Shown here piece by piece: positions 1,228-61,344 of a stretch of 64,000 bases of DNA (the stretch's first letter is position 1; every line of letters starts with the position of its first letter). The stretch is taken from positions 214,127 to 278,126 of the IMG/VR virus record IMGVR_UViG_3300047510_001118. The stretch is one strand, 5' to 3'. The notes below the pieces were generated by a model. It saw only the letters and a list, made by a program, of their open reading frames with translations, ran no database searches and had not been told where the DNA came from. The translations under genes were made by a program, and so were the position numbers.

Positions 1228-1458
1228 TCAGTCACTGTCCTCATCCTTGGTTTTGGTTTTGCCTATAAGTTCTTTACGTTTTGACAGTATTTCTATGCGC
1301 CTTTTAGTAGCCATCTCTCGCACTGTTCTCAGTGCTTCTCTGGCTTCTACACTTGATCCAATGTAACCATATCGTTCAAAGCGATCATTCCATCTACAGT
1401 AGGCAATAATCGCTTTGATCAACTCTTCATGTGTGTCGTTATCGAACTCTTCACTCAT
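1228..1458 (-). CDS. Small helical basic protein, possibly Hc1 / histone-H1-like
   Basis: RFER.G..SSVEAREALRTVREMATKRRIEI resembles the KF..G.KAA..RARKAL.E..K...R pattern; K/R-rich C-terminus. Confidence 0.4.
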   Translation of the reverse strand: MSEEFDNDTHEELIKAIIAYCRWNDRFERYGYIGSSVEAREALRTVREMATKRRIEILSKRKELIGKTKTKDEDSD

Positions 1459-3235: not shown

Positions 3236-4236
3236 AGATTATTATAAATTGCCAATAATACTTTGGGATCATAGTTATCGCTTTGTATACTTGCGATTTG
3301 ATTGCTGACAATTTGGTCAATACTTTCAAATTGTTCTACATTTAGATCTGTGTTAATCTCTATTTCTTTTTTCTCTGGAATAAGTGTTAACTCTCTAAGA
3401 TTATTTTGTTTTACAAATGTTTCTTTGATAAAACTTGCCTCTTCAAAACTAATTGGAAGGTCAATACCTACTCTAAGATATGTTTTAGGTAGAATAAGTT
3501 TTTCACTGTTGTCTAATAATTCACTGAGTTTAAGTGTTTTAAATTTAGGAGCATCGTTCCATATCTTATATACCGGAGATTTTCCATGCTCTAAGATCAT
3601 CATACCACGGTCATCGTCCCAGGCATCAGCATAATTGTGCGGAAATGCGTTGCCAATATACACAATATTCTGTTTAGCCTGACGCTTATGGAAGTGTCCT
3701 GAAAACACATATTCGGGATTCTTAAAATGATCTGCCTGTAACTCGCCATGATCTGGCATCTGTACCATAGCATTCATCATAAACAAGGGAAGTTCAAAGT
3801 GACCAAACACATAGCGGCTCTTTAATTTTTCCATTTTACGCCATTCGTCACCAACTAACCACGGGACTAGAGTAACGTCGTCGATAGTTAGTATGTCACT
3901 GACAATGGTGACTCCGGGAATATGGCGTCCCCAGTCTACAGAGTGTACATCGCGTTTATCTTTGTAATATAAATCGTGATTACCGGGAAAGAAAAAGAAT
4001 TGGTCAAAGGCTTTGCCTAATTTTTCTAGGCTTCGAATGCTACTAACCATAGTTAACATATTAAGGCTGTTGCGATTATGATGCCAATCGCCTAGAAAAA
4101 TTCCAGTATCACAGCCTTCTTTTTTAGCCTCAGCAATAAACCAATCTACGAAATCTTCGCAGTCTTGATTATGTGCTGCCGAATTTGATTTTAATCCAAA
4201 GTGTATGTCTGTAAAACACGCAACCTTTTTAAACAT
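3232..4236 (-). CDS. gp47: Mre11/SbcD-like metallophosphoesterase nuclease (T4 gp47-like)
   Basis: DIHFG, GDWHH, GNHD, GHFH motifs. Start set at ATG 4236 using SD AGGA. Confidence 0.93.
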   Translation of the reverse strand: MFKKVACFTDIHFGLKSNSAAHNQDCEDFVDWFIAEAKKEGCDTGIFLGDWHHNRNSLNMLTMVSSIRSLEKLGKAFDQFFFFPGNHDLYYKDKRDVHSVDWGRHIPGVTIVSDILTIDDVTLVPWLVGDEWRKMEKLKSRYVFGHFELPLFMMNAMVQMPDHGELQADHFKNPEYVFSGHFHKRQAKQNIVYIGNAFPHNYADAWDDDRGMMILEHGKSPVYKIWNDAPKFKTLKLSELLDNSEKLILPKTYLRVGIDLPISFEEASFIKETFVKQNNLRELTLIPEKKEIEINTDLNVEQFESIDQIVSNQIASIQSDNYDPKVLLAIYNNL

Positions 4237-4260
4237 TAACAATTCCTATAGTTTTGGTAT

Positions 4261-37543: not shown

Positions 37544-37822
37544 TTAATGATTTGTGTACTTTAAATGTGAGCAAGCCAGTAAAAAGAAACTAAGCTCTTT
37601 TGGCTCTTCAAAACCAATTTTAGTTTTAATTTGAAATTGGTTATTCTCTAATGTTAGCGTTTCTCCAATATAAAATCTATACCGAAGATTTTCGTAAACC
37701 CATTCTCTAATTGCTTCAGTTAAATTGTACTTAACATCCAAATAATGATAATGAAAATAGGGAGGCGGATCTGGCACCTCCCTACAATCCAAAACATTTA
37801 GCGGATTAATCTTACGATTCAA
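37544..37822 (-). CDS. Hypothetical phage protein
   Basis: 92-aa ORF overlapping the VWA gene stop. Confidence 0.65.
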   Translation of the reverse strand: MNRKINPLNVLDCREVPDPPPYFHYHYLDVKYNLTEAIREWVYENLRYRFYIGETLTLENNQFQIKTKIGFEEPKELSFFLLACSHLKYTNH

Positions 37823-38991
37823 TTTTTTCCTTCGTAATACGCATAAGAACCAAATGGTGGAACAACAGTGTCGTTACCGTGAATGATAAAGATTGTATCA
37901 CAGTAATCTTCGTCACCCCAACTGTCCCAAGGATAGCCATCTGTAAACATGATGAACTTTTTAGGAACAATGTCATGTTCTTTCATATATTCCCAATTAC
38001 AGGTAAAGTCAGTGCCGCCACCGCCCATAACTTCGTAGTCGTTGATTTGATCTGCTGAGTATCCGTCAAAATCTTGTTCGTTATATACACGAGTATCAAA
38101 GCACCAAACTTTCATGTTAAAGTCTTTGAACTCTTCCATAATACCTTTGATTTCACTCATAAAATCTGAGGCTTGATCGTCACCAATAGAACCTGACATA
38201 TCAATACCAATACAAATATCAATAGTAGTATCAAAGTTACAACCTGGTATAATTGCTCCAGTCATTTGACCTTTGCGGCTAGGACGACTCCAACTAAAGT
38301 CATTCTTAATTGTGCTTTGGATTTGTTGACGTAGTAACTCACGCCAATTCATCTTAGGCTCAGTCATTTCTTTAATCATTCGAGCAATTTCCCCAGGCAC
38401 GTTACCTGCGCCTGCGGCCTGTGCGGCTTGGATCATTGCTTCTTTAATTTCGTCACGAATTTTCTTTAATTCTTCTTTAGAATATTTTGGACCATTTCCG
38501 TCACCGTCTTTGTCTGGATCCAAATGCTGATCCAAAAGTTCGCCTAATGCTGATAGTTGTTCTTCGTCATACTTGCTGTAAATTTCGTCATAGACTTGTT
38601 CAGCACTCCAGCCGTCATACTTACGATCATAGAAGAATTTAACAGGAGGATCATCGCCGATGCGTTCACGCTTCAATAGACCATTAACACAATAGTCAGC
38701 GGCAATATTCCAAACTTGTTTATCTCTGCCTTCGTTACGCATCATGTGATCGTAAACACAATGTAAGATTTCGTGAGCAACAACAAATTCGACTTGTCGC
38801 GGAGTCATCTTTTCAAAGAATTCTCTGTTAAAAAAGAAATTACGGAAATCAGTAGCGGCAGTAGGAAGCCAATCACTTGCGTCTACTAATTTCATACGAG
38901 TAGCCATATTACCAAAAAATGGATGACGTAGTAAAAGTCCTACTCTGGCTACAACAATTTTATCAATAATTGGATCTTGTGAATGCGACAT
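37819..38991 (-). CDS. VWA-domain protein with N-terminal HExxH metallopeptidase-like domain (DUF2201-like)
   Basis: AHEILH, WNIAADY..N, MIDAS DMSGS, GGGGTDF, FTDG. Confidence 0.88.
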   Translation of the reverse strand: MSHSQDPIIDKIVVARVGLLLRHPFFGNMATRMKLVDASDWLPTAATDFRNFFFNREFFEKMTPRQVEFVVAHEILHCVYDHMMRNEGRDKQVWNIAADYCVNGLLKRERIGDDPPVKFFYDRKYDGWSAEQVYDEIYSKYDEEQLSALGELLDQHLDPDKDGDGNGPKYSKEELKKIRDEIKEAMIQAAQAAGAGNVPGEIARMIKEMTEPKMNWRELLRQQIQSTIKNDFSWSRPSRKGQMTGAIIPGCNFDTTIDICIGIDMSGSIGDDQASDFMSEIKGIMEEFKDFNMKVWCFDTRVYNEQDFDGYSADQINDYEVMGGGGTDFTCNWEYMKEHDIVPKKFIMFTDGYPWDSWGDEDYCDTIFIIHGNDTVVPPFGSYAYYEGKN

Positions 38992-39021
38992 TTTGGCTCC
39001 GTTTGTTTACTGTATGTATAT

Positions 39022-39050
39022 ATTATACAATCGTTCTAAATTTTTGTCAA
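39022..39050 (-). promoter_or_regulatory. Sigma70 consensus promoter
   Basis: TTGACA-17 nt-TATAAT with TG extension. Confidence 0.88.
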
Positions 39051-39052
39051 GA

Positions 39053-39076
39053 CAAAGGCGCATTTCTGCGCCCTTG
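39053..39076 (-). terminator. Probable terminator hairpin after AAA+ gene
   Basis: CAAGGGCGCA-gaaa-TGCGCCTTTG; weak U tract. Confidence 0.55.
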
Positions 39077-39085
39077 TTTTTTAAA

Positions 39086-40186
39086 TTAGCGGCTCTTTTC
39101 TTGAGCAGCCGCAATATACTTACCAAACTTCTCATGAAACTCATCGAAGCAGTCGATCTCGTCTGGATCCAATGGAAGTTGATATTGGGTAAGAGCAAGT
39201 TTAGTACCCATAACAACCAATTCAGTTTCAAAATTGTCCATGATAAAACGGAAGAAATGGTTTACTTTTTCGTTGAACTTTTTATCGTTTTTGTCTGAAG
39301 CATCTTTAAGTTCGTAGCACAGACTAACAGTCAACGAGTACATAGCACTAATTTCTTTAGTGTCCATTTTCTTAACTTTACCTGCCAAAATATCTTCTGG
39401 CTTTGGCAGTTTAGACGAAACTTTACGGTGAGCCATGAATTTAATAGCCAAACCTTCACCGACGGCACCTGAGATAAGATCGGTTAGTGTACTTTCGTCA
39501 GTGTCATCGTCTTCCAACAACTCGCTGACAAATGACCAAGAACGAGGAGTAGCAAACGCACGGCTTGAACTTTTTGGATCAAAGTCGTACAGATCTTTCT
39601 TAGCAAAAGTACAGTAACCAACTACATCCTTATGTACTCGATTATCGGTAGCCCACTGTGCCCAGTCATCAAAGTCTACACGCATTTCCAAGTGAACGAA
39701 TCGGTTTGCCAACGGAGCAGGCATACGATAAGTAACACCCTTATCTGCTTCACGGTTACCTGCGGCAACGATTAGGACGTTATCGGGCAGACGATACTGT
39801 CCAACACGTCGATTCAAAATAAGTTGATAAGCCGCCGCCTGTACACTAGGAGCCGCACTGTTCATTTCGTCCAAGAACAAAATTACGTGGGGGAAATTTT
39901 TAGCAAATTCTTCAGTTGGAAGTTCGCTAGGTTGTCCCCAAACCATTGTTTTTTGTACAGAATCAAAATAAGGGATACCCTTAATGTCAGTGGGTTCCCA
40001 AAGACTCAAACGGATATCAATTACATGAGCATTGAGTTCTTCACCAATTTGATGAATGATATCAGATTTACCAATACCTGGAGGCCCCCAAAGAAACAAT
40101 GGACGTTTCTTTTTAAATGCTTTACGTACAGCATTTTTAGCACCATTTGGGCTAACTTGACGATTAATGACTTCTGCTTTAGACAT
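39086..40186 (-). CDS. MoxR-like AAA+ ATPase
   Basis: GPPGIGKS, LFLDEMN, AAGNR, PAPLANRF, TPRSW. Confidence 0.9.
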   Translation of the reverse strand: MSKAEVINRQVSPNGAKNAVRKAFKKKRPLFLWGPPGIGKSDIIHQIGEELNAHVIDIRLSLWEPTDIKGIPYFDSVQKTMVWGQPSELPTEEFAKNFPHVILFLDEMNSAAPSVQAAAYQLILNRRVGQYRLPDNVLIVAAGNREADKGVTYRMPAPLANRFVHLEMRVDFDDWAQWATDNRVHKDVVGYCTFAKKDLYDFDPKSSSRAFATPRSWSFVSELLEDDDTDESTLTDLISGAVGEGLAIKFMAHRKVSSKLPKPEDILAGKVKKMDTKEISAMYSLTVSLCYELKDASDKNDKKFNEKVNHFFRFIMDNFETELVVMGTKLALTQYQLPLDPDEIDCFDEFHEKFGKYIAAAQEKSR

Positions 40187-42668: not shown

Positions 42669-43096
42669 GAGACTTCTGATTTACCTTCGGCTAGTTTTTT
42701 AACATTGATATATCCACCTGTTCGATCAGTCATATCAATACCCTCTTCGTCGGCTACGTCCTTACACAGTGTTCGAAACCAACGATCTACAATCTGTTCT
42801 TCAGGATCTCCCTCAAAACCATAACCTTCTTGCTTTAATTGTAGCACGAATTGTTCATTCCAGTCAAGCTCAAAAAATCCGTTACGTAAATTTTCTTTAT
42901 TGACATGAGTTTCCAAAACTGCCACATAGGGCTCTCCTAAGGCAGTGGCACGCTCTTTTGGAGACATCTTTGCCAATTCTTCTTCTTTTTTAGCAGCCTC
43001 TGCTCTAGTTTTAGCCAATGCTGTTTCGACAACTAGTTGTTCTTTTTCTTCTTCTAGTTTTTTAATCCCAGTAATTTTTTTAAGCCAATCTTTCAT
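42665..43096 (-). CDS. Hypothetical phage protein (start refined to MKDWLKK)
   Basis: TAATG coupling with queE stop; GFFELDWN motif. Confidence 0.7.
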   Translation of the reverse strand: MKDWLKKITGIKKLEEEKEQLVVETALAKTRAEAAKKEEELAKMSPKERATALGEPYVAVLETHVNKENLRNGFFELDWNEQFVLQLKQEGYGFEGDPEEQIVDRWFRTLCKDVADEEGIDMTDRTGGYINVKKLAEGKSEVS

Positions 43097-43950
43097 TATG
43101 TCCCCCATTCATTTTTAAATAGTGGAACTTGTAGTCTATCACTATATCTTAAACCGTTTTTCATTGCTAGTTCAGCAACTCTACGATTATTCAGAGTATA
43201 AACTGATTCAACACCACCTACGGGCATAAGATAACAAGATCCAGTAAAACCATTTTCTCGATACACATCTAATGTCTCTAATGCTTCTTCGGCATCTTCT
43301 TCTGTAGCAACTACAAATTTAAGATATGTATGACCAACTTCTTGATATTCGCAAATAACGTCAGGTTGAATTGCTTCGTTACGTTCTTCGCCTGAGCAAC
43401 TTAATTTAGCACTTACACTAAATGTAATTTCTTTATGATAATCTAATTCTGGCATTTGCCATTGTATTAGATAATCTTTAAATTCTGAACTTAACTTTTG
43501 AGTACCATTTGTTTCAAATGTAATTTCTTTTAGTCCTGCCATTTTAGGATGATTTAATAAATCTGGATAAGCACGTTGCCAACCCAACAACGGTTCCCCG
43601 CCTGTGATAACTAGATGTTCGTCTCGCCATTCATTGAACGGCAATATTTCCATTATACGCTCAGCAATAGCATCACTAGTAAGCATAGGACTAAGATCCT
43701 TGAACCTTGGATCCCAACTTGCGTAACTATCGCAGCCAGTAGTAACAAGAGGTAGTTCTTCATATTTGTTAAATTTATCTACTATTTGCGCGATTGCGTC
43801 TACTTCTGTGCTTAGTTGGCCTCTAGGCATACCAAAACCACTACATTTAAAGTTACAGCCAAAGGTACGCAAGAAAACAGAAGGAACGCCCATATAGCGT
43901 CCTTCACCTTGTATGCTGTAAAATAATTCTGCTATTTTTATTTTACTCAT
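43096..43950 (-). CDS. queE: 7-carboxy-7-deazaguanine synthase (radical SAM)
   Basis: ELFYSIQGEG..GVPSVFLRTFGCNFKC...CDS, VITGGEP, FETNGT, YLKFVV, LMPVGG, RLQV. Confidence 0.9.
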   Translation of the reverse strand: MSKIKIAELFYSIQGEGRYMGVPSVFLRTFGCNFKCSGFGMPRGQLSTEVDAIAQIVDKFNKYEELPLVTTGCDSYASWDPRFKDLSPMLTSDAIAERIMEILPFNEWRDEHLVITGGEPLLGWQRAYPDLLNHPKMAGLKEITFETNGTQKLSSEFKDYLIQWQMPELDYHKEITFSVSAKLSCSGEERNEAIQPDVICEYQEVGHTYLKFVVATEEDAEEALETLDVYRENGFTGSCYLMPVGGVESVYTLNNRRVAELAMKNGLRYSDRLQVPLFKNEWGT

Positions 43951-44240
43951 TGTTTTAATATTTCCATTGTTGCGATTTTAGCAATACGATCGCCAAAATC
44001 TTGATCATTGGTAATGATATAGGTTTGATTAAAATTACGATCTCGTTGACGATCATAATGTCTAAACTCTACAATCTTTCCACCTACGGCACTAAACACT
44101 CTAAAATTTAGAATAGGGTCTGAATCTGAAACTGATTCAACGTCTCGGCTGGCAACTAGCACTTCGCCGCGACTAACTTTATTAGCATTTTCCCAATCGT
44201 CACGCACCCAGCGGACTACCATTTTTTTAAACCAATTCAT
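43947..44240 (-). CDS. Hypothetical protein (start refined to MNWFKK)
   Basis: ATGA overlap with upstream stop. Confidence 0.65.
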   Translation of the reverse strand: MNWFKKMVVRWVRDDWENANKVSRGEVLVASRDVESVSDSDPILNFRVFSAVGGKIVEFRHYDRQRDRNFNQTYIITNDQDFGDRIAKIATMEILKQ

Positions 44241-44452
44241 GCTCGATCCTTTAACCACAAATCAACCTGTGCTTCTGCTTCTTCTTGTGTGACAGCATAA
44301 GCATAGATCCAATAACAGTCATCCTTGCCTTTGATATCGAATGGTACAGGACCATTAAACAAGATGCCGTCTTCTAGCATACGTTTGACTTCAAACTTTT
44401 TTAAATTTTTGGCACGATTAATTAAATCGTTAGCCATATCTACTGAATTCAT
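44237..44452 (-). CDS. Hypothetical protein
   Basis: 71-aa ORF coupled to folE. Confidence 0.65.
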   Translation of the reverse strand: MNSVDMANDLINRAKNLKKFEVKRMLEDGILFNGPVPFDIKGKDDCYWIYAYAVTQEEAEAQVDLWLKDRA

Positions 44453-45273
44453 CTTGGGGCAAACTCCTGTTGTAATTTAATATTATCAAAGAATTCTTTC
44501 TTTGTATTACCATCTTCTTTAAACGCACCTTTAAGCACTGTAGTCTGTGTTAAACTGCTATGTGCCATGATACCACGGTTTTCACAACAACCGTGCGTTG
44601 CTTGAATATAAACACCTAGATCTTTGGCTCCTGTAGCCTTTTCGATCTCCCTAGCAATGTCATTAGCAAGTTCCTCCTGGAGAGTACCACGTCGGGCGCA
44701 CCACTGTGCGATGCGTGTGTACTTACTGAGTCCGATGAGTTTCTGAGCCGCAATAATACCAATATAAGCAACGCCACTAACGGGTTGGTGATGATGGCTA
44801 CACATACTGCGAAGCTCACTGCGAACAACCAACATACCTTCGTAGCGGTCCTCCGAATCATTTGGGAAAGCCGTCGCGTCTGGTGATGGTTCATATCTTC
44901 CTGCCATTATTTCATTAAAGTACATCTTGGCAAGCCTACGTGCTGTGCCTTTTGAGTTAGGATCGTTCTCACGATCAATTAAGAGTCTATCTAATACAAG
45001 TTCAAAGGCTTCTGTGGCTTCGTCGATAAGTTTAGATTTATCTTCTTCACTTACATAGTCTGAGATGTTGTCGCCTGCCCAAAAACGCTTGTTATCACGT
45101 TTCATCTTAAAGCGAATAGTATCGCCCAAATACGCTTCTTTGTAACCTTTATCAGACATCATGTCTGCGGCTTTAACAAATACTTCTTTGCCCAAAGGTT
45201 GATATTCGTCTTTTACAAAGTCTTTATCGATCTTATGATTAATTATTGGGTCTGGTTTAAATTTTTCTGTCAT
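44449..45273 (-). CDS. folE: GTP cyclohydrolase I with N-terminal extension
   Basis: TARRLAKMY, SMCSHHHQP, IGLSKYTRI, LQEEL, HGCCENRG, TTVLKGAF. Confidence 0.93.
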   Translation of the reverse strand: MTEKFKPDPIINHKIDKDFVKDEYQPLGKEVFVKAADMMSDKGYKEAYLGDTIRFKMKRDNKRFWAGDNISDYVSEEDKSKLIDEATEAFELVLDRLLIDRENDPNSKGTARRLAKMYFNEIMAGRYEPSPDATAFPNDSEDRYEGMLVVRSELRSMCSHHHQPVSGVAYIGIIAAQKLIGLSKYTRIAQWCARRGTLQEELANDIAREIEKATGAKDLGVYIQATHGCCENRGIMAHSSLTQTTVLKGAFKEDGNTKKEFFDNIKLQQEFAPR

Positions 45274-45289
45274 TGTAATTCTCCGAGTT

Positions 45290-45342
45290 ATAGACGTGGA
45301 TGTCTATGTTTTATTATATAGGTTTATTTAGGTTTTTGTCAA
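45290..45342 (-). promoter_or_regulatory. Sigma70 promoter (18-nt spacer containing TAAATA) plus leader hairpin for folE
   Basis: TTGACA (45342-37)-18 nt-TATAAT (45318-13); ATAGAC-atccac-GTCTAT hairpin 45307-45290. Confidence 0.7.
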
Positions 45343-45637
45343 TAATTACATTGCCGTTTTCATCGTAGGTATACCAACTATTAAGTTCAGAATCCCAATG
45401 GCGATTATCATAAATTCGAAATGCTATTCCGTAACCTAACACACCTAAAACAAATTCTAATCCAGCATGATCTCCCTTGGTAGCGAATTTAAATTCAACA
45501 TCCAATAATTGATTGCTGTAATAGGTATGCTCTAATTCCCAAAATTTGTTTTTAGAAATTTGTCCGTGAAGACAACCGAGGTTACGAAAATAATCCCAAC
45601 TCCAGGGACTGGCAATTTCTAAACGAAAATTAATCAT
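45314..45637 (-). CDS. Hypothetical protein
   Basis: 107-aa ORF in operon. Confidence 0.6.
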   Translation of the reverse strand: MINFRLEIASPWSWDYFRNLGCLHGQISKNKFWELEHTYYSNQLLDVEFKFATKGDHAGLEFVLGVLGYGIAFRIYDNRHWDSELNSWYTYDENGNVIIDKNLNKPI

Positions 45638-45858
45638 GTTCTATATAAATTGGTTTGTCCGTTTTCTTGATTTTTACGTATTTCTTCTCTGCGAAGTTGT
45701 CTACATTCTTCTTTAACACGGGCAGGAATATCTGGATGCCATTCTGCCATACCGCAATCGTAGGCTTTGGATCTTTCTTCGTTTATGCCCATTAGAAGAA
45801 AGATAGTAAAAATCAGCAAGATTAAAATTATAATCTTTCCGACAATAAGATTCGACAT
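45634..45858 (-). CDS. Small membrane-anchored protein
   Basis: N-terminal hydrophobic IIILILLIFTIFLLMG; CGMAEWHPDIP..VKEEC. Confidence 0.65.
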   Translation of the reverse strand: MSNLIVGKIIILILLIFTIFLLMGINEERSKAYDCGMAEWHPDIPARVKEECRQLRREEIRKNQENGQTNLYRT

Positions 45859-46046
45859 AAGTCAGCGTCCCTTAGTGATTTAAAAATAAAAGTCATTGAA
45901 TCTTGTTCTGGGTGACTAGTATATCGATTTCCAGGAAGTCCAAATACTTCCAAAACCATAGCACAGGTTTCGTTCCACCAAAATCCGTTTTGATTATCCC
46001 AAAGAATACAGATCTTATGCTGATCTGTTGCTAGTGCAACTGTCAT
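45828..46046 (-). CDS. Hypothetical protein
   Basis: 72-aa ORF in operon. Confidence 0.55.
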   Translation of the reverse strand: MTVALATDQHKICILWDNQNGFWWNETCAMVLEVFGLPGNRYTSHPEQDSMTFIFKSLRDADLCRILLSERL

Positions 46047-46212
46047 TCCACATTTCCTGTGCTTGTTTTTTATATTCGTTTAAATCCCACTCGGCTTGCT
46101 TGGCTTGATATTGTTCTTCACTTAATCCGTGCCAGCCTATACAATCTCCAGTGGGGCTACGACCGCAACCACAAGTTCCAATTTTTCCTTCTGGATTAGC
46201 TCTTACTTGCAT
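46015..46212 (-). CDS. CDGSH-like iron-sulfur / zinc-finger protein
   Basis: CGCGRSPTGDCIGWH matches the C-x-C-x7-C-x3-H ligand spacing; start refined to MQVRAN. Confidence 0.65.
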   Translation of the reverse strand: MQVRANPEGKIGTCGCGRSPTGDCIGWHGLSEEQYQAKQAEWDLNEYKKQAQEMWNDSCTSNRSA

Positions 46213-46579
46213 TTTTATAATTTCCTTTACTTGGTATAACGTGACGTACCCCGCCACGAGGATCTTCCATGTCTCCCTTTCTGCGGGGAATCATATGGAT
46301 GTGCGGATACATCACTGTTTGGCCAGCAGCCTCGCCACAGTTTTGCCCGACGTTAAAAGCGTCCCAACGTTCCGAGAGGACTCCGTCGGCACCAAACTTG
46401 TAGGCTGCTCTGTAACATTCCATAATGTTTTCAAAGCGTTCTTGGGTTGGCACAAAGAGCAAATGTCCCTCCGATACGGGATAGGCGTCTCTAAAAACCC
46501 AAAAGTCTTTTGTTCGATATTCAATTTCTGTCCACGGTGCTCGTCGTTCATTTAGTGCTTTCTCCAGATCATTAATCAT
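46196..46579 (-). CDS. HIT-family nucleotide hydrolase
   Basis: DAYPVSEGHLLFVP, NVGQNCGEAAGQTVMYPHIHMIPRR.GD; start at ATGA overlap. Confidence 0.88.
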   Translation of the reverse strand: MINDLEKALNERRAPWTEIEYRTKDFWVFRDAYPVSEGHLLFVPTQERFENIMECYRAAYKFGADGVLSERWDAFNVGQNCGEAAGQTVMYPHIHMIPRRKGDMEDPRGGVRHVIPSKGNYKNASKS

Positions 46580-47154
46580 TTCCAGTATTCCTCCCAAGGA
46601 TATACTAACCAGCAATCTTCTTCGGCTTTGTTGACTTCCCAAGCATAATAATCTATGTCTGCTTGACTAGATAGATTATTTGTCAGTACAGCGAATCGAA
46701 CATTTTGATGCCAAATGTCTTGATCCCAGGAAGGATCATTGGGCATACATCCACTACGCCAATCTTCTTTAATCCAATTAATTGTAGCACCTGTATCATT
46801 AATATCGTCTATGATCAAGATATTTTTATAACTGTCGCCTTTTTCTAAAAGATCAGCCGCCGCTTCGAATATGCCTTCGATATCGTTTTCATCTTCAACA
46901 AATCGTTCAGATTGATATCCAAAGGCATCTTCGGCCATGCCTAAATCACTAACGGTTTGACCACCATCTCTGAGACTGACTTCTAACGGACGCATAGGAA
47001 CGCCTAAAAACTGACTGATCATTACAGCAGGAATAGCACCACCTCTGGTGATGCCGACAACATAATCAGGACGCCATCCGCTGGTAATAACACTTCTTGC
47101 TATTTCTAAACAAGCACCTTCAACATCCGACCAACTGTAATAGATTTTTTTCAT
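46576..47154 (-). CDS. Type I phosphoribosyltransferase (Gpt/xanthine-guanine PRT-like)
   Basis: VVGITRGG.IPA, PRPP loop ILIIDDINDTGAT, WLVYPWE. Confidence 0.85.
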   Translation of the reverse strand: MKKIYYSWSDVEGACLEIARSVITSGWRPDYVVGITRGGAIPAVMISQFLGVPMRPLEVSLRDGGQTVSDLGMAEDAFGYQSERFVEDENDIEGIFEAAADLLEKGDSYKNILIIDDINDTGATINWIKEDWRSGCMPNDPSWDQDIWHQNVRFAVLTNNLSSQADIDYYAWEVNKAEEDCWLVYPWEEYWK

Positions 47155-47381
47155 GATGTTAGTGCTGACGCTAATAATGACATTTCTTCTTTGGTCATGA
47201 AAAAATTGTAAACAGCAGTGTCAACAATTTCGCCGTCTTTTAGTGATTGTTGTTCAAAATCAACACTAAAAAGACCTTTGGGATTTATTACTTCGTGTTG
47301 TTTTAACACAAGTCGAAATCCTTCGTGATTTTTAATTACTGTTTCTTTATAAGTCTGTCTAACTGATTCATGTAGTTCCAT
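47151..47381 (-). CDS. Hypothetical protein
   Basis: SD AAAGGAG 6 nt before ATG 47381. Confidence 0.6.
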   Translation of the reverse strand: MELHESVRQTYKETVIKNHEGFRLVLKQHEVINPKGLFSVDFEQQSLKDGEIVDTAVYNFFMTKEEMSLLASALTS

Positions 47382-47778
47382 CTTCATCTCCTTTAATTGC
47401 TTCCCATGTTCTATATTTGGCCAGTGCTTTAATATAGTCGTCGTACATCTTTTTAAGTTTTGGATGTTTCTTTTCTAGTTTAACATCTCTTTCGGGCATA
47501 TTCAAGACTTTTTCAATAGTTTCCAAACGTTCTTCTAAGTCAACACCGTTAATAATCATATTACCTTTGACTTCTAAAGTGGGCGGATTACCTTGTTTAA
47601 TTGTCATTGCCTCGTTTGGATTGGTCCAGGTTACATTCGTTCCTGTTGAAGTATAGATCAAAGGACCAGTAGTAGTTCCCGTGCCAATAGTGTAACTACT
47701 GCCACTAGCACCTGTACCGGTTAAGGTTACTGTGCTATTGCTGTTTGTTAAGTTTCCGATCGTATAAGTATTTGTCAT
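47368..47778 (-). CDS. Hypothetical protein, T/G/S-rich N-terminus and coiled-coil C-terminus
   Basis: LEVKGNMIINGVDLEERLETIEKVL; start refined to MTNTYT. Confidence 0.65.
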   Translation of the reverse strand: MTNTYTIGNLTNSNSTVTLTGTGASGSSYTIGTGTTTGPLIYTSTGTNVTWTNPNEAMTIKQGNPPTLEVKGNMIINGVDLEERLETIEKVLNMPERDVKLEKKHPKLKKMYDDYIKALAKYRTWEAIKGDEDGTT

Positions 47779-48196
47779 TGTGAATCCAATTATCGTCAAC
47801 AAGAAATCCCCATTCTCGTCGATGTGGACCAGGCATAAACAGCGTCCATGCTGTAACGCCTTCCTTTAATTCAATACGATGGTAACTTGTTGGACTACAT
47901 ATACGAAAGTGTCCGGGGCCACGCCATTTTCTTATTTCGCAACTTTTTGTTCCATCAGCATTAAATTGGGGAATCCATTCGTAGTAACCACCTTTGAGAA
48001 TAAGGGTGGCATAAGGCCAAGGATGATCGTGAACATCGTCCGGATCACCTTTTAAAAATTTATGTAAAAAGATATTGAAAGGAAAACGATTCCTTTCTTT
48101 TAAAAACAAATAATAACGTTCTAGATACGGCTCATTATATTGACGATCCATGATAATTCGTTTACGTCCGAGTTTATCTAAAAGTTTTAAAATCAT
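47735..48196 (-). CDS. Cupin-fold protein
   Basis: HDHPW..ATLILKGGYYE motif 1 and YHRIEL..TAWTLF motif 2. Confidence 0.75.
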   Translation of the reverse strand: MILKLLDKLGRKRIIMDRQYNEPYLERYYLFLKERNRFPFNIFLHKFLKGDPDDVHDHPWPYATLILKGGYYEWIPQFNADGTKSCEIRKWRGPGHFRICSPTSYHRIELKEGVTAWTLFMPGPHRREWGFLVDDNWIHNDKYLYDRKLNKQQ

Positions 48197-49290
48197 ACAA
48201 GTCTTTCTAAAAGTGTATCTGCTGAAAAGAAATTATCTGTTAAATCTTTAGTCTGTTTACGTAGTTGTGGCAAGAACTTGTCATAGTTATCCATGTATTG
48301 AATAATCTTAGCACAAAGTTCTGGACGATGTGTTTGATATGTTTCAAAGGACTCGGTCCAGGTACTTGGATATTTGAAAGTATCGTAATACATTTCTTTA
48401 TAACTTAGTCGATCCGGCACCATAGGAATAGCATCTACAACAGCACCTTCATAACAACTGATGCCTAATGTTTCTTGTAGATTAGCACTGAACACTAGTT
48501 TTGCTTCACCTAACAAATTATGGTATTCGTTCTTTGTAAGTTGTTGATCCTGACAAACAACAAATTCATATTGTGGTAAGTGTTCTTTTAGATCTCTAAA
48601 GATTTCTACTTGTTTTTCTGGAGCAATGCGATGTGGAAACAGAATTAGATTACGTTTAACCATTCCTTTATATGTGGTTAAAGTATCTTCCATATATTCC
48701 ATAGGCCACCCTGATCGAACAATCTTTGGAATCTTTCCTTGAAGAGCATCTTGAATGTCTTCTTCCAACCAAGGGTTTTCTATCATACTATCATTTAACA
48801 AATTCTTCATAAACATTTCAATATGAAAATTTGTAGCAAAATAATTATAGTTGATAGCATGAAAGAAACTTTTTTCAGCGTGTCTAACCCACGGAGCATC
48901 ACCGATAAGTCGACCTAAGAAGTCTTGAGGATCATAACTACCAGCATGCCAAAGTGCGTGAATTTTTACAGGAATCTGTAATAGTTCACTCATATACTTT
49001 AAGTTTATGATACCAGGATGCCAAGCATCAGTAAAGATGAAGTGATCATTAGGAGCCACTGATCCACCGCAAAACAGCCGGCCCATCTGTTCAACTTGAG
49101 CAGACTTATATATATTGGTGCCGCCAAAATTAAGGAAAGCACCAGGAGTGGTCGCACTAGGAATATCTGTAGGACCAGATATAATTTGAACATTGTGTCC
49201 TCTCTTCCGTAACAGAGTTGGTAGATGTGTCTTCCACTGTGAAGTGTAGCGTGTTTCTACCGACTCTAGATCTACAAGGTAGATCGTCAT
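48193..49290 (-). CDS. GT-B (GT4-like) glycosyltransferase
   Basis: LFPHRIAPEKQ, ETLGIS.YEG..VDAIPMVPDRLSYKEM donor-binding motif. Confidence 0.75.
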   Translation of the reverse strand: MTIYLVDLESVETRYTSQWKTHLPTLLRKRGHNVQIISGPTDIPSATTPGAFLNFGGTNIYKSAQVEQMGRLFCGGSVAPNDHFIFTDAWHPGIINLKYMSELLQIPVKIHALWHAGSYDPQDFLGRLIGDAPWVRHAEKSFFHAINYNYFATNFHIEMFMKNLLNDSMIENPWLEEDIQDALQGKIPKIVRSGWPMEYMEDTLTTYKGMVKRNLILFPHRIAPEKQVEIFRDLKEHLPQYEFVVCQDQQLTKNEYHNLLGEAKLVFSANLQETLGISCYEGAVVDAIPMVPDRLSYKEMYYDTFKYPSTWTESFETYQTHRPELCAKIIQYMDNYDKFLPQLRKQTKDLTDNFFSADTLLERLV

Positions 49291-49496
49291 TGACGATTAT
49301 TCCTGTAGTTATTTTGGCCTCTCGGCTTCCACTCTTTGCGTTCAAATCTTCTTGGACGCTTACTTGCCTCGTAGGCCTGCCAAATTTTACTTTGGCGGTT
49401 ATACAAATCTGCCGGATTATACGGCAACATTTCAAACCTGCAGAAATCCAACAGGGCGTCGAGATCATCAAAAATCCTAACGACTTCTTGTTTCAT
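49287..49496 (-). CDS. Hypothetical protein
   Basis: 69-aa ORF, R/N-rich end, SD AAGGA. Confidence 0.65.
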   Translation of the reverse strand: MKQEVVRIFDDLDALLDFCRFEMLPYNPADLYNRQSKIWQAYEASKRPRRFERKEWKPRGQNNYRNNRQ

Positions 49497-49513
49497 CTTT
49501 TTATTTCCTTTAA

Positions 49514-49909
49514 TTAATATTTGATGAACGAACCATTTTCTCCATCTTCGGAGACCTCAATCCAAACCTCACGGCCAGGATACTTCTTGCTAATGATGTC
49601 ATATAAATCGTCTGACATCATTTCGCAACTCTTGTAGTCAAGGCTCAAAACGGAACCTTGACCATTATACAGCGACTCGAGCCATCGTTTGAACTGGATG
49701 AACTCGATGTCCCTGTCATTGTGTTGCACATTGATCCACACCCTGAAATGAAAGATGTGGCGATGAGGATAACCAAGAAACGATACATCATATTCATCTC
49801 CTGTTTTTAATTTTGGATCTTCTAGGGCCGCAGGATATTTGTGAATTCCTTCTTTGCGGAAAGTAACCCAGATCATTTTGTTAGGGCGAACATCTTGTTT
49901 AATGATCAT
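49514..49909 (-). CDS. QueD-like T-fold protein (6-pyruvoyl-tetrahydropterin synthase family)
   Basis: EGIH, HRHIFH metal motif, SCEM, IEVSEDGENG; sits in queE/folE/tgt cluster. Confidence 0.65.
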   Translation of the reverse strand: MIIKQDVRPNKMIWVTFRKEGIHKYPAALEDPKLKTGDEYDVSFLGYPHRHIFHFRVWINVQHNDRDIEFIQFKRWLESLYNGQGSVLSLDYKSCEMMSDDLYDIISKKYPGREVWIEVSEDGENGSFIKY

Positions 49910-50424
49910 TTAATAATTTTATCGTTGATATATTGTGACCAGTCTGTGAACTTACTACGATCCATTAGTGTGTGTAGACTGTGGGACCACACACCGGGAT
50001 TAGTTGCCTTAAAATCTTTGTCATCGATTTTAAGCATTGTATTATAATTCCAAAGTTTTATGTAAGGAATTGGAACACGAATCTGCGGAATAAAGTTATT
50101 GTATTCGCAGTAACCGCTTTCATGAAATTCTTCAACTTGATTAATTGGAATATCTAAACTACAAAGAATTCCTTCTTCTAACAAAGGAAAAATCATATTT
50201 TCCCAAGATTTGTGTTCTTCATAATTTTGCGGGTTAAAACTGTGATTAGCGCCAAAGAAAATATGTTTACAAAGTTCGTTGGCGTAGTGCTGTTTAATTT
50301 CAGTATATGATTGTACACCAGTTACAAACAGTGTTTTCAAACCATAGGCGGGCGTGTGTTCTATCTCTTCTCCAACGAAGAAAATAATTTTATCTTGAGA
50401 ACCGTCTTGATAATCTCTTATCAT
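49906..50424 (-). CDS. Conserved-looking hypothetical protein in deazaguanine cluster
   Basis: FFVGEEIEHTPAYGLKTLFV, HIFFGANHSF, DFKATNPGVW; start refined to MIRDYQ. Confidence 0.7.
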   Translation of the reverse strand: MIRDYQDGSQDKIIFFVGEEIEHTPAYGLKTLFVTGVQSYTEIKQHYANELCKHIFFGANHSFNPQNYEEHKSWENMIFPLLEEGILCSLDIPINQVEEFHESGYCEYNNFIPQIRVPIPYIKLWNYNTMLKIDDKDFKATNPGVWSHSLHTLMDRSKFTDWSQYINDKIIK

Positions 50425-50425
50425 T

Positions 50426-50674
50426 TTAGTACTTGGTTTTTGATTTTGTACAAAGGAAGGTGCTACCTGATTCTTTTCCAACCATCGTCCACAACCGATA
50501 ATCGGCCGATAGAATACATTCGTTATAGGTTGAAAAACTATCGTCGCTCATTTTCATTAAATTTCCAGTTTCTCGAAATTCTAAGGCTACAACATATTTA
50601 GGTTTAGACCATGCTTGATATGAAACAAACAGAGCACATAGCAAAATTGTTACTAATAGGATTCGAGTTTTCAT
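50426..50674 (-). CDS. Small exported protein
   Basis: Signal-peptide-like MKTRILLVTILLCALFVSYQAWS; two Cys in mature part. Confidence 0.6.
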   Translation of the reverse strand: MKTRILLVTILLCALFVSYQAWSKPKYVVALEFRETGNLMKMSDDSFSTYNECILSADYRLWTMVGKESGSTFLCTKSKTKY

Positions 50675-52233
50675 TCCATGCCTTCTTCAAGTTTATCTAA
50701 ATTTTGAGCCTCTTCATCGGTAAATTCTTCACCGTGTTCTAATTGTACAGTCTCTTCTTCTGTTTCGTCAAAGAATTTGGCAAAGTTAGTGCTGGCATTG
50801 ATTGTTTTCTTACCAGTAGCACCGCGAGTTCCAATAATACTAATCCAAAATTTACTGTATTCAGTTATTATGGCTTCTGCTTCTGCTCTATCGCTGGTAG
50901 CAAAAATAGCCTCAACTATGTCTTTGAAAAACAGTCTATCAAATTTTTCTTGAACCAACATAGCAGGAACAATTCCAGCATCATATTGTCGATTGGCTTC
51001 TTGAACAGCATTAATATGCATCCAAACATTATGTCCCATTTGAATAGCATAACTAAAACTATCCCAACTGGTTTTACCAATTTTTCCAATCTTGTTCATA
51101 TCGGTTGGACCATATATACAGACATCAGATACTTTTAATTCTGCGCTGATTGGACTATCTTCAAAACCTTTGAATCGTCCATCTTGAACACCAACTGCTC
51201 CAAACGGACGATTGTCTTGATAATATTTTTTATCATCTATACTAGGAACCATTCGATACACCCACTTGGTGCGATCTTCAATTTCTGTTTGAATATAAAT
51301 TTGTCCATTGGCAGTTGCTAGGAATGGACTAGCACAGTCAAAACTAATAGTAAAATTAGGATTATGATATTTTCTAACAGCACGTTGGATGTCAGTGAGT
51401 AACGTAGCCCACTCTAATTTACTAGTACCAAGAAAGTGCATCCAGTCATGTACACCAGGTTCTAACAGTCCATCAAATCTTAACGCTACTAATCTACGCA
51501 ATACCAAATGAACATCACACATATTCTGACCACCCATAGCCCAGCCATTAAAATGACGTCCGGGATATTGTTTTGGATCGCAGTATTTTTTCATACGATC
51601 ATACCAATCATCTGCCTCGGCATGATTCTCGCCTTGTAGAACATTAAGAAACTTACAAGAACCAGTTCTATTGTTAATAAACCAATCGTTGTTAATGTAA
51701 GTACCTTGAACGGCTTCCATATAACTGTTAATACCAGTGGCTTCTCTGCCACGAGGACTACGGCAGACCCAGGCAGGAATATCAAGAATCATGCCATAAT
51801 CCATGTAAGCGTCCATCCACTTAAGAACCTGCTCACGTTTCTTTTGTGCTTTAGGACAGTTAGGATTTTTCCAATCTCCTTCCCAAACACCTTTACCAAT
51901 TTGGAAACCGCCCGAATCGCCTAACAGCCAACTGTCAGCACGATTACGATTACGTACCATATCTTCTTTAGGAGAAAATTTATTAGTATCTAAATCTGCG
52001 TGTCCAGCAGAGTATAGGCTCCAATGATATTGAAACTGTCCCTGTTGCGGATTTAACCAATTAAGACTTTCTACACCGTTGGTGAAGTTACTAGGTACTC
52101 TAGCAGGATCCACATACAGTCCTTTGACAGGATCTGGAAAACGTTGTTTTCCTACATAGGTAGCATAAAACCCGCTAAGTGCCGGTAAAAAGATAGCGTA
52201 GTCGTTCTGTGCGGCTGTTAAATTTTTATTCAT
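50671..52233 (-). CDS. tRNA-guanine-transglycosylase-like protein (DpdA-type DNA 7-deazaguanine insertase candidate)
   Basis: LGDSGGFQIG, MILDIP, FLNVLQG, GWAMGG, MHFLG, SFDCAS match TGT barrel motifs; clustered with queE/folE/queD-like. Confidence 0.8.
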   Translation of the reverse strand: MNKNLTAAQNDYAIFLPALSGFYATYVGKQRFPDPVKGLYVDPARVPSNFTNGVESLNWLNPQQGQFQYHWSLYSAGHADLDTNKFSPKEDMVRNRNRADSWLLGDSGGFQIGKGVWEGDWKNPNCPKAQKKREQVLKWMDAYMDYGMILDIPAWVCRSPRGREATGINSYMEAVQGTYINNDWFINNRTGSCKFLNVLQGENHAEADDWYDRMKKYCDPKQYPGRHFNGWAMGGQNMCDVHLVLRRLVALRFDGLLEPGVHDWMHFLGTSKLEWATLLTDIQRAVRKYHNPNFTISFDCASPFLATANGQIYIQTEIEDRTKWVYRMVPSIDDKKYYQDNRPFGAVGVQDGRFKGFEDSPISAELKVSDVCIYGPTDMNKIGKIGKTSWDSFSYAIQMGHNVWMHINAVQEANRQYDAGIVPAMLVQEKFDRLFFKDIVEAIFATSDRAEAEAIITEYSKFWISIIGTRGATGKKTINASTNFAKFFDETEEETVQLEHGEEFTDEEAQNLDKLEEGME

Positions 52234-53795: not shown

Positions 53796-53824
53796 ATTAT
53801 ATTTAGGTTTTTGGTCAAAGTCAA
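53796..53824 (-). promoter_or_regulatory. Sigma70 consensus promoter with embedded TAAATA
   Basis: TTGACT-17 nt-TATAAT; CTAAATA overlaps -10; SD AAGGAG. Confidence 0.85.
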
Positions 53825-60760: not shown

Positions 60761-60913
60761 TTAATGTTCTCCGTATGGATTTTTTGGTCTGTCAGTACCG
60801 TCGTCTTCTGGAAAAACTTCGTATTTTTCTTCCTTCGCTGGTTGACTTATATCTTTCTTTAATTCTTCTTGAGCACGTTTAATGTAATCTGCTAGTGTTT
60901 TATCTAAGATCAT
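60761..60913 (-). CDS. Unannotated 50-aa acidic protein
   Basis: MILDKTLADYIKRAQEELKK...NPYGEH*; ATGA overlap with dps stop, TAAATG junction with next gene. Confidence 0.6.
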   Translation of the reverse strand: MILDKTLADYIKRAQEELKKDISQPAKEEKYEVFPEDDGTDRPKNPYGEH

Positions 60914-61344
60914 TTTAATGTAGCCCTTAACATCCAACTGTGCTTGCGATGTGCGTCTTGACGACCTGCTAAAAAATCAGCAAGACCATGTTCTCCATTA
61001 CGTTCAGCAATGTCAAACACTAGTTTAAAAATATTAGCCATCCTATCAGAGTCTTCTAATAAGATTTCTGTCATTGATCTAGCATCTGGAATTTCAGTTT
61101 CGTCATCAATTTTTGATAACATTGAAAATCTTTCAAAACTGCCAGGAGTATAACTGCCTGCTTTGCGAATGTTTTCAGCAAAGTCATCAATACTACCATA
61201 GACTTCTTCGTAGATTCCGCCAAACAGTTCGTGATACTGTTGAAAGTTTTCGCCTTCTACGTTCCAATGAAAGTACTGTGCTTTTAGATAAAAACTAAAT
61301 TCACTGGCAAAAGAAATTTTAAGTGCTTTGATTAATTCATCCAT
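60910..61344 (-). CDS. dps: Dps / ferritin-like DNA-protection protein
   Basis: KAQYFHWNVEGENFQQYHELF..IYEE...DDFAENIR, HRKHSWMLRA. Confidence 0.92.
   Translation of the reverse strand: MDELIKALKISFASEFSFYLKAQYFHWNVEGENFQQYHELFGGIYEEVYGSIDDFAENIRKAGSYTPGSFERFSMLSKIDDETEIPDARSMTEILLEDSDRMANIFKLVFDIAERNGEHGLADFLAGRQDAHRKHSWMLRATLK

Follow-up and report, generated by a model that had tools for sequence, protein, structure and literature searches.

Does a glycosyltransferase encoded within a 7-deazaguanine DNA-modification cluster of a freshwater giant phage belong to that pathway, and could it place a sugar on the modified base? The cluster lies in a 64,000-nucleotide stretch (the window) of IMG/VR record IMGVR_UViG_3300047510_001118, positions 214,127 to 278,126, and the sequence was found only in assembled contigs of freshwater metagenomes. 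A first-pass annotation had described folE, queD-like, queE and TGT-fold (DSGGFQ) genes at 43096-52233, co-oriented with GT-B glycosyltransferase (GT), cupin, PRTase and HIT genes and with no queC, queF, gat-queC or arcS in the window. It proposed that the inserted base may be CDG (7-carboxy-7-deazaguanine) or a derivative, which is then glycosylated. The description is confirmed, as all of these genes exist on the minus strand (Table 1), with the single correction that the queD-like gene is DpdL. The interpretation holds only in part: this is a 7-deazaguanine DNA-modification cluster without queC in the window, and the GT belongs to it, but the lack of queC is a published pattern and the base expected in DNA is 7-deazaguanine or a derivative of it, rather than CDG. 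The new element is the GT. No paper linking a glycosyltransferase to 7-deazaguanine DNA was found, and it appears about as likely as not that the sugar goes onto the deazaguanine. The GT is built into the pathway in many unrelated phages, so these phages may carry the first sugar-decorated purine seen in DNA.

Table 1. Features of the cluster, with the number of related loci in which each gene is present.
Coordinates	Strand	Feature	Length	Domain or family match	Related loci
50671..52233	-	DpdA-like DNA guanine transglycosylase, divergent TGT fold (DSGGFQ motif at 51918)	520 aa		
49906..50424	-	p191, conserved protein of unknown fold and function	172 aa		66 of 67
49514..49909	-	DpdL, QueD paralog (T-fold), proposed CDG decarboxylase			60 of 62
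49287..49496	-	p69, small conserved protein, function unknown			most
48193..49290	-	GT-B (GT4-like) glycosyltransferase, fold predicted	365 aa		47 of 47 with room for it
47735..48196	-	Cupin-fold protein, accessory		phrog_4786, 1.4e-37	19 of 43
46576..47154	-	Type I purine phosphoribosyltransferase (XGPRT-like)		PF00156, 2.7e-11	32 of 39
46196..46642	-	HIT-family nucleotide hydrolase or transferase, accessory; likely true start near 46579		PF01230, 9e-9	16 of 39
45313..45342	-	Perfect sigma-70 consensus (TTGACA-18-TATAAT) in the gap upstream of FolE			
44449..45273	-	FolE, GTP cyclohydrolase I, with a 75-aa N-terminal extension		PF01227, 5e-39; NCBIfam FolE, 7e-39	32 of 35
43096..43950	-	QueE, 7-carboxy-7-deazaguanine synthase (radical SAM)		PHROG QueE-like, 2.7e-52; five NCBIfam QueE models, 1e-11 to 1e-14	27 of 33

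Start and stop codons overlap between DpdA and p82, p191 and DpdL, p69 and GT, and GT and cupin, indicating a single transcription unit. The sigma-70 site is a consensus match only, and promoter-like sites are not enriched in the region as a whole. The cupin assignment is supported by a cupin fold in the ESM Atlas, where some relatives are fused to NUDIX, while the best NCBIfam match of the PRTase is xanthine PRTase. The p69 protein is conserved at 38-70% identity in most related loci and occurs also in a sister lineage (see below).

We first asked how the pathway proceeds without QueC. No QueC, QueF, QueD or ArcS domain appeared in any sizeable ORF of the window scanned with Pfam and NCBIfam, and neither a PTPS domain nor a CxxxHGH motif (the QueD signature) in any real ORF was found. 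The annotation had named a wider search for queC and queF as a test of its reading: neither was detected within plus or minus 10 kb around 80 relatives, but one syntenic relative, L094, does carry QueC, and since the remainder of this genome was not examined, whether the phage itself lacks QueC, QueF and QueD is left undecided. The T-fold protein contains LGYPHRHIF, matching the DpdL signature LxxxHRHxF, and tblastn connects it to gp040 (DpdL) of Cellulophaga phage phiST at 1e-9. This motif is present in all but one of the homologs found, including phiST gp040, with PA5oct having HFH in place of HRH. DpdL is the proposed CDG decarboxylase of the QueC-less route to 2'-deoxy-7-deazaguanosine (dDG), which was measured to replace all G in phiST (Hutinet et al. 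2023, PMC10516641). The nucleosides of the present phage were not measured, and the decarboxylase activity of DpdL has itself never been shown in vitro.

The phiST system shares with the window FolE, QueE, DpdL, a very divergent TGT-fold DpdA, a position next to the DNA polymerase and, as far as the 64-kb window shows, the absence of QueC. It differs in having no homolog of the GT, p191 or the PRTase, and in encoding its own QueD. The phiST DpdA3 (CGPG_00065) is 259 aa, half the length of the window protein; hhalign gave 69% probability over 82 columns, a weak relationship that does not settle membership of the DpdA3 subfamily.

The DpdA-like protein has no Pfam, NCBIfam or PDB sequence hit, and no match to Pfam TGT (PF01702) or an NCBIfam DpdA model was obtained even at E up to 1; the same holds for the ACP17, BUDD, PA5oct and phiST proteins. 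However, an AF2 model (pLDDT 90) gave as its ten best Foldseek PDB matches Z. mobilis TGT and DpdA 7ui4, with probability 1.0 and E 7e-6, albeit with modest TM scores of 0.31-0.48. The TIM-barrel fold of TGT is thus supported. Residues D106, S107, G109, D151, P153, H266, G269 and D299 are invariant in 49 diverse homologs. The three aspartates belong to the DSGG, LDxP and (F/Y)D(C/S) motifs and align with the same motifs in the ACP17 and BUDD DpdA proteins; they are taken as equivalent to TGT D102, D156 and D280, although no superposition was made. Comparison by hhalign gave 96% to the ACP17 DpdA and 94.6% to the BUDD 'queuine tRNA-ribosyltransferase'. The conserved p191 lies directly after DpdA in the related loci and directly before it in ACP17 (E 3e-25). 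It has 35 invariant residues, and its AF2 model (pLDDT 80) has no significant PDB match, the only probable match in BFVD being the ACP17 homolog (E 3e-3).

That the TGT-fold protein might act on tRNA had been named as an outcome that would count against the annotation. The closest solved folds are indeed tRNA-guanine transglycosylases. In contrast, DpdA 7ui4 is among the top matches, the gene sits between the sliding clamp and replication genes, no tRNA gene occurs in the window, and the family has no conserved cysteine cluster corresponding to the Cys3-His zinc site of TGT. Furthermore, DNA of PA5oct, which carries a homolog, resists G-specific restriction enzymes (PMC12191111). We consider a tRNA substrate highly improbable.

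The GT of the window itself falls below the Pfam threshold, but 8 of 22 family members hit PF00534 (best 6.8e-12), and E273-x7-E281 (the EX7E motif), R221 and K226 are conserved, with the catalytic motifs retained across all lineages. A family profile gave weak hits to GT4 structures. ESM Atlas neighbours are GT4/GT1 families, with TM 0.7-0.8 to GT4 models; this was seen only through the model of a near-identical cluster, none having been made of the window protein, so the two-Rossmann-domain GT-B fold is not settled by this observation. No T4 alpha-GT or beta-GT family appeared among the hits of the 22 members, and no QTMAN_N domain was detected.

To determine whether the GT is coupled to the pathway, we examined its co-occurrence with dpdA-like genes across phages, a comparison the annotation had named as a check of its proposal. 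The GT follows the DpdA-like gene in 47 of 47 related metagenomic loci that have room for it, at a median of 1.6 kb. Of 23 GenBank phage records with a GT homolog, 18 have DpdL within 3 kb; these are PA5oct-like phages, Phosso, ACP17, BUDD, X1, BCSR5 and BUCT-ZZ01, seven cultured lineages with seven different gene orders. Searching from the GT side, 75 of 80 loci with a BUCT-type GT and 4 of 4 with a BUDD-type GT carry DpdL. Neighbours transferred together as a block are not independent observations. A sister lineage keeps the order DpdA-p191-DpdL-p69-GT with a GT only about 23% identical, so the slot is conserved while the enzyme is replaced. The syntenic relative L094, which has QueC, lacks DpdL, the GT and p191. 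Further sugar enzymes lie in these clusters: a PIG-L deacetylase in BCSR5 and a second GT in BUCT-ZZ01.

Acidovorax phage ACP17 and Pseudomonas phage PA5oct have the same GT family (34% and 39% identity, respectively) directly after the DpdA-like gene, plus DpdL and QueE, ACP17 additionally having p191. The DpdA-like protein is 32% identical in PA5oct and detectable only by profile in ACP17, and neither phage has the PRTase, HIT or cupin in its cluster. In most of these records the GT is annotated as hypothetical; where it is called a glycosyltransferase it is not linked to the pathway. PA5oct is reported to have a modified G of unknown chemistry, its DNA resisting enzymes whose sites contain G and being attacked by nucleases that sense hypermodified DNA (PMC12191111). 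ACP17 DpdL plus DpdA alone gave no dDG in E. coli, and the authors suspected that enzymes were missing.

We propose that the cluster is a QueC-independent, DpdL-type 7-deazaguanine DNA-modification module of a freshwater jumbo phage, extended by a GT. In this model, phage FolE converts GTP to dihydroneopterin triphosphate, a QueD not in the window (host-encoded or elsewhere in the genome) makes CPH4, phage QueE makes CDG, and DpdL removes the carboxyl group to give 7-deazaguanine. The divergent DpdA-like transglycosylase would exchange guanine in phage DNA for this base after replication, possibly helped by p191, and the XGPRT-like PRTase most likely recycles the released guanine to GMP. The GT4-like enzyme would then transfer a sugar from a nucleotide-sugar onto the deazaguanine, most likely once it is in DNA, with the cupin and HIT proteins as optional tailoring enzymes. 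Sequence establishes the family assignments of FolE and QueE, from which their reactions are inferred; the DpdL and DpdA steps rest on homology to the phiST/ACP17 system, with dDG measured in phiST; the QueD, PRTase and GT steps are inferences, the last from gene neighbourhood only. No chemistry was measured for this phage or any GT-positive relative, and 7-deazaguanine has no hydroxyl group, making the acceptor atom not obvious. The attachment atom and sugar have not been identified, candidates for the former being C7 of the pyrrole ring freed by decarboxylation, N2, or O6. The window has a canonical ThyA and DHFR and no hydroxymethylase, and hence no obvious pyrimidine acceptor. Overall, we regard this model as slightly more likely than not.

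A plain dDG system as in phiST, with the GT in the replication module acting on something unrelated to DNA (a host envelope glycan, a phage protein or a small thiol-like metabolite), is the main alternative. The phiST group has DpdL and plain dDG without this GT, which is thus not needed for insertion, and GT4 enzymes usually act on lipids, sugars or small molecules. More distant GT homologs (about 25% identity) in PhiXhv-type phages lie with GlmS and a BshB/PIG-L-like deacetylase, with no annotated deazaguanine-pathway gene nearby, so the wider GT family has other acceptors. The co-occurrence in seven lineages and in 47 of 47 and 75 of 80 loci, and the loss of the GT together with DpdL in the QueC-carrying variant, make this alternative unlikely.

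It is also possible, although doubtful, that the GT acts on a free intermediate, either the deazapurine base or a pterin, as cyanobacterial pteridine glycosyltransferases do, yielding a glycosylated substrate for insertion or a separate metabolite. FolE together with a T-fold enzyme and a GT is also the logic of pterin-glycoside synthesis, the predicted DpdL structure suggested action on the free base, and the clusters hold nucleotide-handling genes (PRTase, HIT). However, QueE (at the frequency given in Table 1) and a DNA transglycosylase accompany the GT, known phage DNA glycosyltransferases act after replication, and a bulky glycosylated base would be an unusual substrate for a TGT pocket.

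Entry of the deazapurine through nucleotides is considered very unlikely. In this view the PRTase couples CDG or DG to PRPP, as TubE and ToyH do in tubercidin and toyocamycin synthesis, the nucleotide is reduced and polymerised, and the TGT-like protein has a secondary or repair role. The frequent PRTase, which lies next to QueE in BUCT-ZZ01, the presence of HIT, whose family handles nucleotides, and the position beside the DNA polymerase agree with this. In contrast, the PRTase is absent from the PA5oct, ACP17, BUDD and BCSR5 clusters, whereas the DpdA-like gene accompanies the GT-DpdL module in all seven cultured lineages and 74 of 80 sister-lineage loci. Every phage with deazaguanine DNA studied so far encodes a DpdA (PMC10516641), and the best family match of the PRTase, xanthine-guanine PRTase, fits guanine salvage.

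The proposed role can be compared with other nucleic acid modification enzymes. The T4 alpha- and beta-glucosyltransferases acting on 5-hydroxymethylcytosine DNA are GT-B phage enzymes that add a sugar to a modified base after replication as a defence against restriction, with GT types swapped between related phages. No sequence similarity to them was detected, and their acceptor is a hydroxyl group on a pyrimidine, whereas the acceptor inferred here is a deazapurine without a hydroxyl. QTMAN (GTDC1), the mannosyltransferase that glycosylates queuosine in tRNA, is a GT4-type GT-B enzyme acting on a 7-deazaguanine derivative in a nucleic acid, and a QTMAN cluster is among the structural neighbours (TM 0.74), a score no better than for generic GT4 enzymes. 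Its acceptor is the cyclopentenediol of queuosine, which this pathway cannot make. The bacterial Dpd system (DpdA, DpdB, DpdC; preQ0 and ADG in DNA) also exchanges guanine in DNA for a 7-deazaguanine using a TGT-fold enzyme, but uses preQ0 made by QueC, needs the DpdB ATPase, has no DpdL and no GT, and modifies only a small fraction of G.

The window is AT-rich (GC about 0.32-0.41) and originates from freshwater metagenomes. Positions 35-64 kb form a single minus-strand replication and nucleotide-metabolism block that runs ThyA, DHFR, a MoxR-type ATPase paired with a VWA protein, a 5'-3' exonuclease, the deazaguanine cluster (43096-52233), a sliding-clamp-like protein and a family-B DNA polymerase. 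The polymerase is closest to those of the jumbo phages Phosso (52%), Atu_ph07 and the Rak2/121Q group. The co-located genes reported by the first-pass annotation are indeed present, and its observation is thus confirmed. Start and stop codons overlap at four junctions, so the genes look co-translated. No QueC, QueF, QueD or ArcS was detected in any sizeable ORF scanned against Pfam/NCBIfam, and no CxxxHGH motif occurs in a real ORF. A megablast search of the region against GenBank phages returned no match.

Coordinates of the cluster genes and of other features in the window and in related loci
Feature	Coordinates	Strand	Observation
QueE	43096-43950	-	PHROG QueE-like 2.7e-52
FolE	44449-45273	-	PF01227 5e-39
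HIT protein	46196-46642	-	
XGPRT-like PRTase	46576-47154	-	
Cupin	47735-48196	-	
Glycosyltransferase (GT), GT-B/GT4 group	48193-49290	-	
T-fold protein	49514-49909	-	131 aa
DpdA-like protein	50671-52233	-	520 aa, DSGGFQ
ORF between DpdA and p191	50426-50674	-	82 aa, signal-peptide-like N-terminus
Sigma-70 consensus sites, near-perfect or perfect	53796-53824 and 45313-45342	-	Upstream of the clamp gene and upstream of FolE
SegE-type GIY-YIG homing endonuclease	766-1212	-	PF19835, 2e-35
SbcC- and SbcD-like genes	1451-4242		Next to the homing endonuclease
Giant ORF	14051-27997	+	4648 aa
MoxR-like AAA ATPase and DUF2201 metallopeptidase/VWA protein	37819-40186	-	Paired, inside the replication block
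Ferritin-like protein	60910-61344	-	PF00210, 1e-19
Inositol-1-phosphate-synthase-like gene and QueC	L094:8452-10845		Syntenic relative
PAPS-reductase-like (PP-loop) protein	L084:4885-5379 and L086:10267-10914		BUDD and BCSR5 clusters

The 520-aa protein has no hit by sequence in Pfam, NCBIfam, PHROGs or PDB, either alone or as a 51-sequence profile, and only comparison of the predicted fold was informative. It is nevertheless very common: about 8000 word-sharing candidates in the 90%-clustered database passed E 0.001, and about 990 clusters at 50% identity matched in an exhaustive search. An AlphaFold2 model built on 49 diverse homologs is confident (pLDDT 90), and its ten best PDB matches are all Zymomonas tRNA-guanine transglycosylase or the DNA preQ0 insertase DpdA 7ui4 (probability 1.0, E 7e-6 to 6e-4). 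The TM scores are modest (0.31-0.48), so the barrel is distant. The invariant residues are D106-S107-x-G109, D151-x-P153, H266-x-x-G269 and D299 in an SFDC context. These motifs align with the same motifs of the ACP17 DpdA (hhalign 96%) and of the BUDD 'queuine tRNA-ribosyltransferase' (94.6%), while the 259-aa phiST DpdA3 matches only weakly (69%). The TGT zinc-binding cysteines are not conserved. We therefore consider the protein a DpdA-like transglycosylase of a distinct long subfamily that is new, abundant and unannotated, and do not assign it to DpdA3. The published subfamily of the ACP17 DpdA was not part of the comparison. As the protein is invisible to Pfam, NCBIfam and PADLOC-style annotation, deazaguanine DNA in environmental phages is strongly under-counted.

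The T-fold protein, described as queD-like by the first-pass annotation, is not QueD. It carries LGYPHRHIF, and Hutinet et al. (PMC10516641) define DpdL, the proposed CDG decarboxylase, by the change of the QueD motif CxxxHGH to LxxxHRHxF. This motif is present in all homologs collected, including phiST gp040 (LSLNHRHLF), with the sole exception of PA5oct, which has HFH. The window protein hits phiST DpdL at 1e-9. Phage phiST has FolE, QueD, QueE, DpdL and DpdA3, has no QueC, and contains dDG in place of all G. The missing queC is therefore the hallmark of a published pathway, and the base to expect is 7-deazaguanine rather than the CDG suggested initially. Some close relatives of the window (loci L007, L030, L040, L041, L043, L047-L049 and L051) have replaced DpdL by a subtype only about 35% identical (motif LENEHRHIF), which is also found in cyanophage BUCT-ZZ01, while the neighbouring genes stay 68-78% identical.

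The glycosyltransferase of the window falls below Pfam thresholds when searched alone, but three lines of evidence place it in the GT-B/GT4 group. Its neighbours in the structural Atlas are GT4/GT1 families, 8 of 22 family members hit PF00534, and the GT4 hallmarks E273-x7-E281, R221 and K226 are invariant or nearly so. The same holds for an unusual N-terminal E9...R14-Y15-T16 motif that may mark the acceptor site.

Co-occurrence of this GT family with dpdA-like genes across phages, proposed at the outset as a check on the link between the two, was examined in metagenomic and cultured phages, and the comparative evidence places the glycosyltransferase in the pathway. Using the single DpdA-like protein as query, we collected 80 IMG/VR loci holding a 68-100% identical gene, and every locus with enough downstream sequence has the GT (47 of 47). 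Among loci with room for each gene, p191, a conserved protein that accompanies the DpdA-like gene, is present in 66 of 67, DpdL in 60 of 62, FolE in 32 of 35, the PRTase in 32 of 39, QueE in 27 of 33, the cupin in 19 of 43 and the HIT protein in 16 of 39. The 82-aa ORF wedged between DpdA and p191 is not conserved in relatives and looks like a moron gene. In GenBank the GT family occurs in 23 records, 18 of which have DpdL within 3 kb. These form seven lineages with seven gene orders: the PA5oct-like phages (DpdA-GT-DpdL), ACP17 (QueD-FolE-p191-DpdA-GT-DpdL-QueE), Phosso (DpdL-GT-x-FolE), BUDD and X1 (GT-DpdA-DpdL-QueE), BCSR5, and BUCT-ZZ01, a T4-like cyanophage (DpdL-GT).

When searched from the GT side, 4 of 4 loci with a BUDD-type GT and 75 of 80 loci with a BUCT-type GT carry DpdL. 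Those 80 BUCT-type loci are a sister group of the window's lineage (PolB 65%, DpdA 54%, DpdL 72%). They keep the order PolB-clamp-DpdA-p191-DpdL-p69-GT, where p69 is a small conserved protein, but their GT is only about 23% identical to that of the window. Hence, the slot is conserved while the enzyme is exchanged. The association is not universal: DpdL occurs without the GT in the phiST group and in five other phages, and GT homologs at about 25% identity sit with GlmS and a deacetylase, with no annotated deazaguanine-pathway gene nearby. Small, probably temperate phages (L092 and L093, 33-kb contigs with an integrase) carry the DpdA-like gene alone, without any biosynthesis gene, and presumably use a host-made deazaguanine. 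Several distant DpdA-like representatives lie on contigs too short to show context. A natural contrast is provided by the syntenic relative L094 (PolB 47-55%, QueE 44%, DpdA-like 33%), which has an inositol-1-phosphate-synthase-like gene and QueC where the window has p191, DpdL and the GT, and which lacks DpdL, the GT and p191. This suggests a different, also uncharacterised, deazaguanine derivative.

Further sugar enzymes lie in the cultured clusters, with a PIG-L-type deacetylase next to the GT in BCSR5 and a second GT next to DpdA in BUCT-ZZ01. In addition, the BUDD and BCSR5 clusters, and 3 of 4 BUDD-like metagenomic loci, contain a PAPS-reductase-like (PP-loop) protein between FolE and the GT. 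It belongs to the same superfamily as QueC and may amidate or otherwise activate the carboxyl group of CDG.

With respect to mechanism, sequence evidence shows the family assignments of FolE and QueE, whereas decarboxylation by DpdL and base exchange by the DpdA-like protein are inferred from homology to the phiST system, and all further steps are inference. QueD would be supplied by the host or by another part of the genome. We considered p191 as a QueD substitute, but rejected this because ACP17 has both. The PRTase would salvage the guanine released by the exchange, as its best family match is xanthine-guanine PRTase and GMP feeds back to GTP, the pathway's own precursor. A TubE/ToyH-like use of CDG plus PRPP is an alternative that we consider less likely, because the PRTase is missing from four of the GT-positive cultured lineages. 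The GT would add a sugar to the deazaguanine, at an attachment point that cannot be deduced. A hydroxymethyl-pyrimidine acceptor was rejected, because the window has a full-length ThyA next to DHFR and no other thymidylate-synthase-like gene. The cupin (fused to NUDIX in some relatives) and the HIT protein are optional, and could tailor the nucleotide-sugar or the base. p191 is an enzyme-like protein with 35 invariant residues and no recognisable fold relative: Atlas scores were 0.42 or lower, PDB gave no match and BFVD gave only the ACP17 homolog. It may be a DpdA partner.

The interpretation offered by the first-pass annotation is partly supported: the QueC-less architecture is already described, while the constant association with a diversifying glycosyltransferase is, as far as we can tell, unreported and predicts a glycosylated deazapurine in DNA. 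Full-text searches found no paper linking a glycosyltransferase to 7-deazaguanine in DNA, although subscription-only papers were outside their reach and earlier work cannot be excluded. Apart from Hutinet 2023, no relevant paper on DpdL appeared among the hits examined, and none mentions DpdA3. The PA5oct study (PMC12191111) infers a modified G from QueE and a PTPS-like gene, without chemistry and without noting the DpdA-like gene or the GT. Hutinet et al. report that ACP17 DpdL plus DpdA gave no dDG in E. coli, and suggest that other enzymes are needed.

We consider it roughly as likely as not that phages combining DpdL, a DpdA-like transglycosylase and this glycosyltransferase carry a glycosylated 7-deazaguanine in their DNA, which would be the first sugar-modified purine base in any genome. 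The sugar might be joined to the electron-rich C7 freed by decarboxylation (a C-glycoside), or to N2 or O6. The sugar type would be diversified by swapping the GT and by extra tailoring enzymes, namely a PIG-L deacetylase, a second GT, a cupin and a HIT protein. Sequencing runs hold the region only as assembled contigs of freshwater metagenomes, so no raw or nanopore reads were inspected for base-calling anomalies at G. The group includes an abundant freshwater jumbo-phage lineage and cultured phages such as PA5oct and ACP17, and as at least six cultured phages carry the module the hypothesis is directly testable. All sugar-decorated DNA bases known so far are pyrimidines (glucosyl- and arabinosyl-hmC, base J, glycosylated hmU and glycosylated 5-hydroxycytosine), and a glycosylated deazapurine would open a new chemical class of DNA hypermodification. 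It would explain the undefined modified G of the therapeutic jumbo phage PA5oct, and could also explain why DpdL plus DpdA alone failed to produce dDG in E. coli.

The two sigma-70 consensus sites lie in the only sizeable intergenic gaps, and may split the cluster into two host-polymerase-driven units. Outside the replication block, the giant ORF is located in the structural module, between baseplate-like genes and tail-collar or fibre-like genes, and probably encodes a giant fibre or adhesin.
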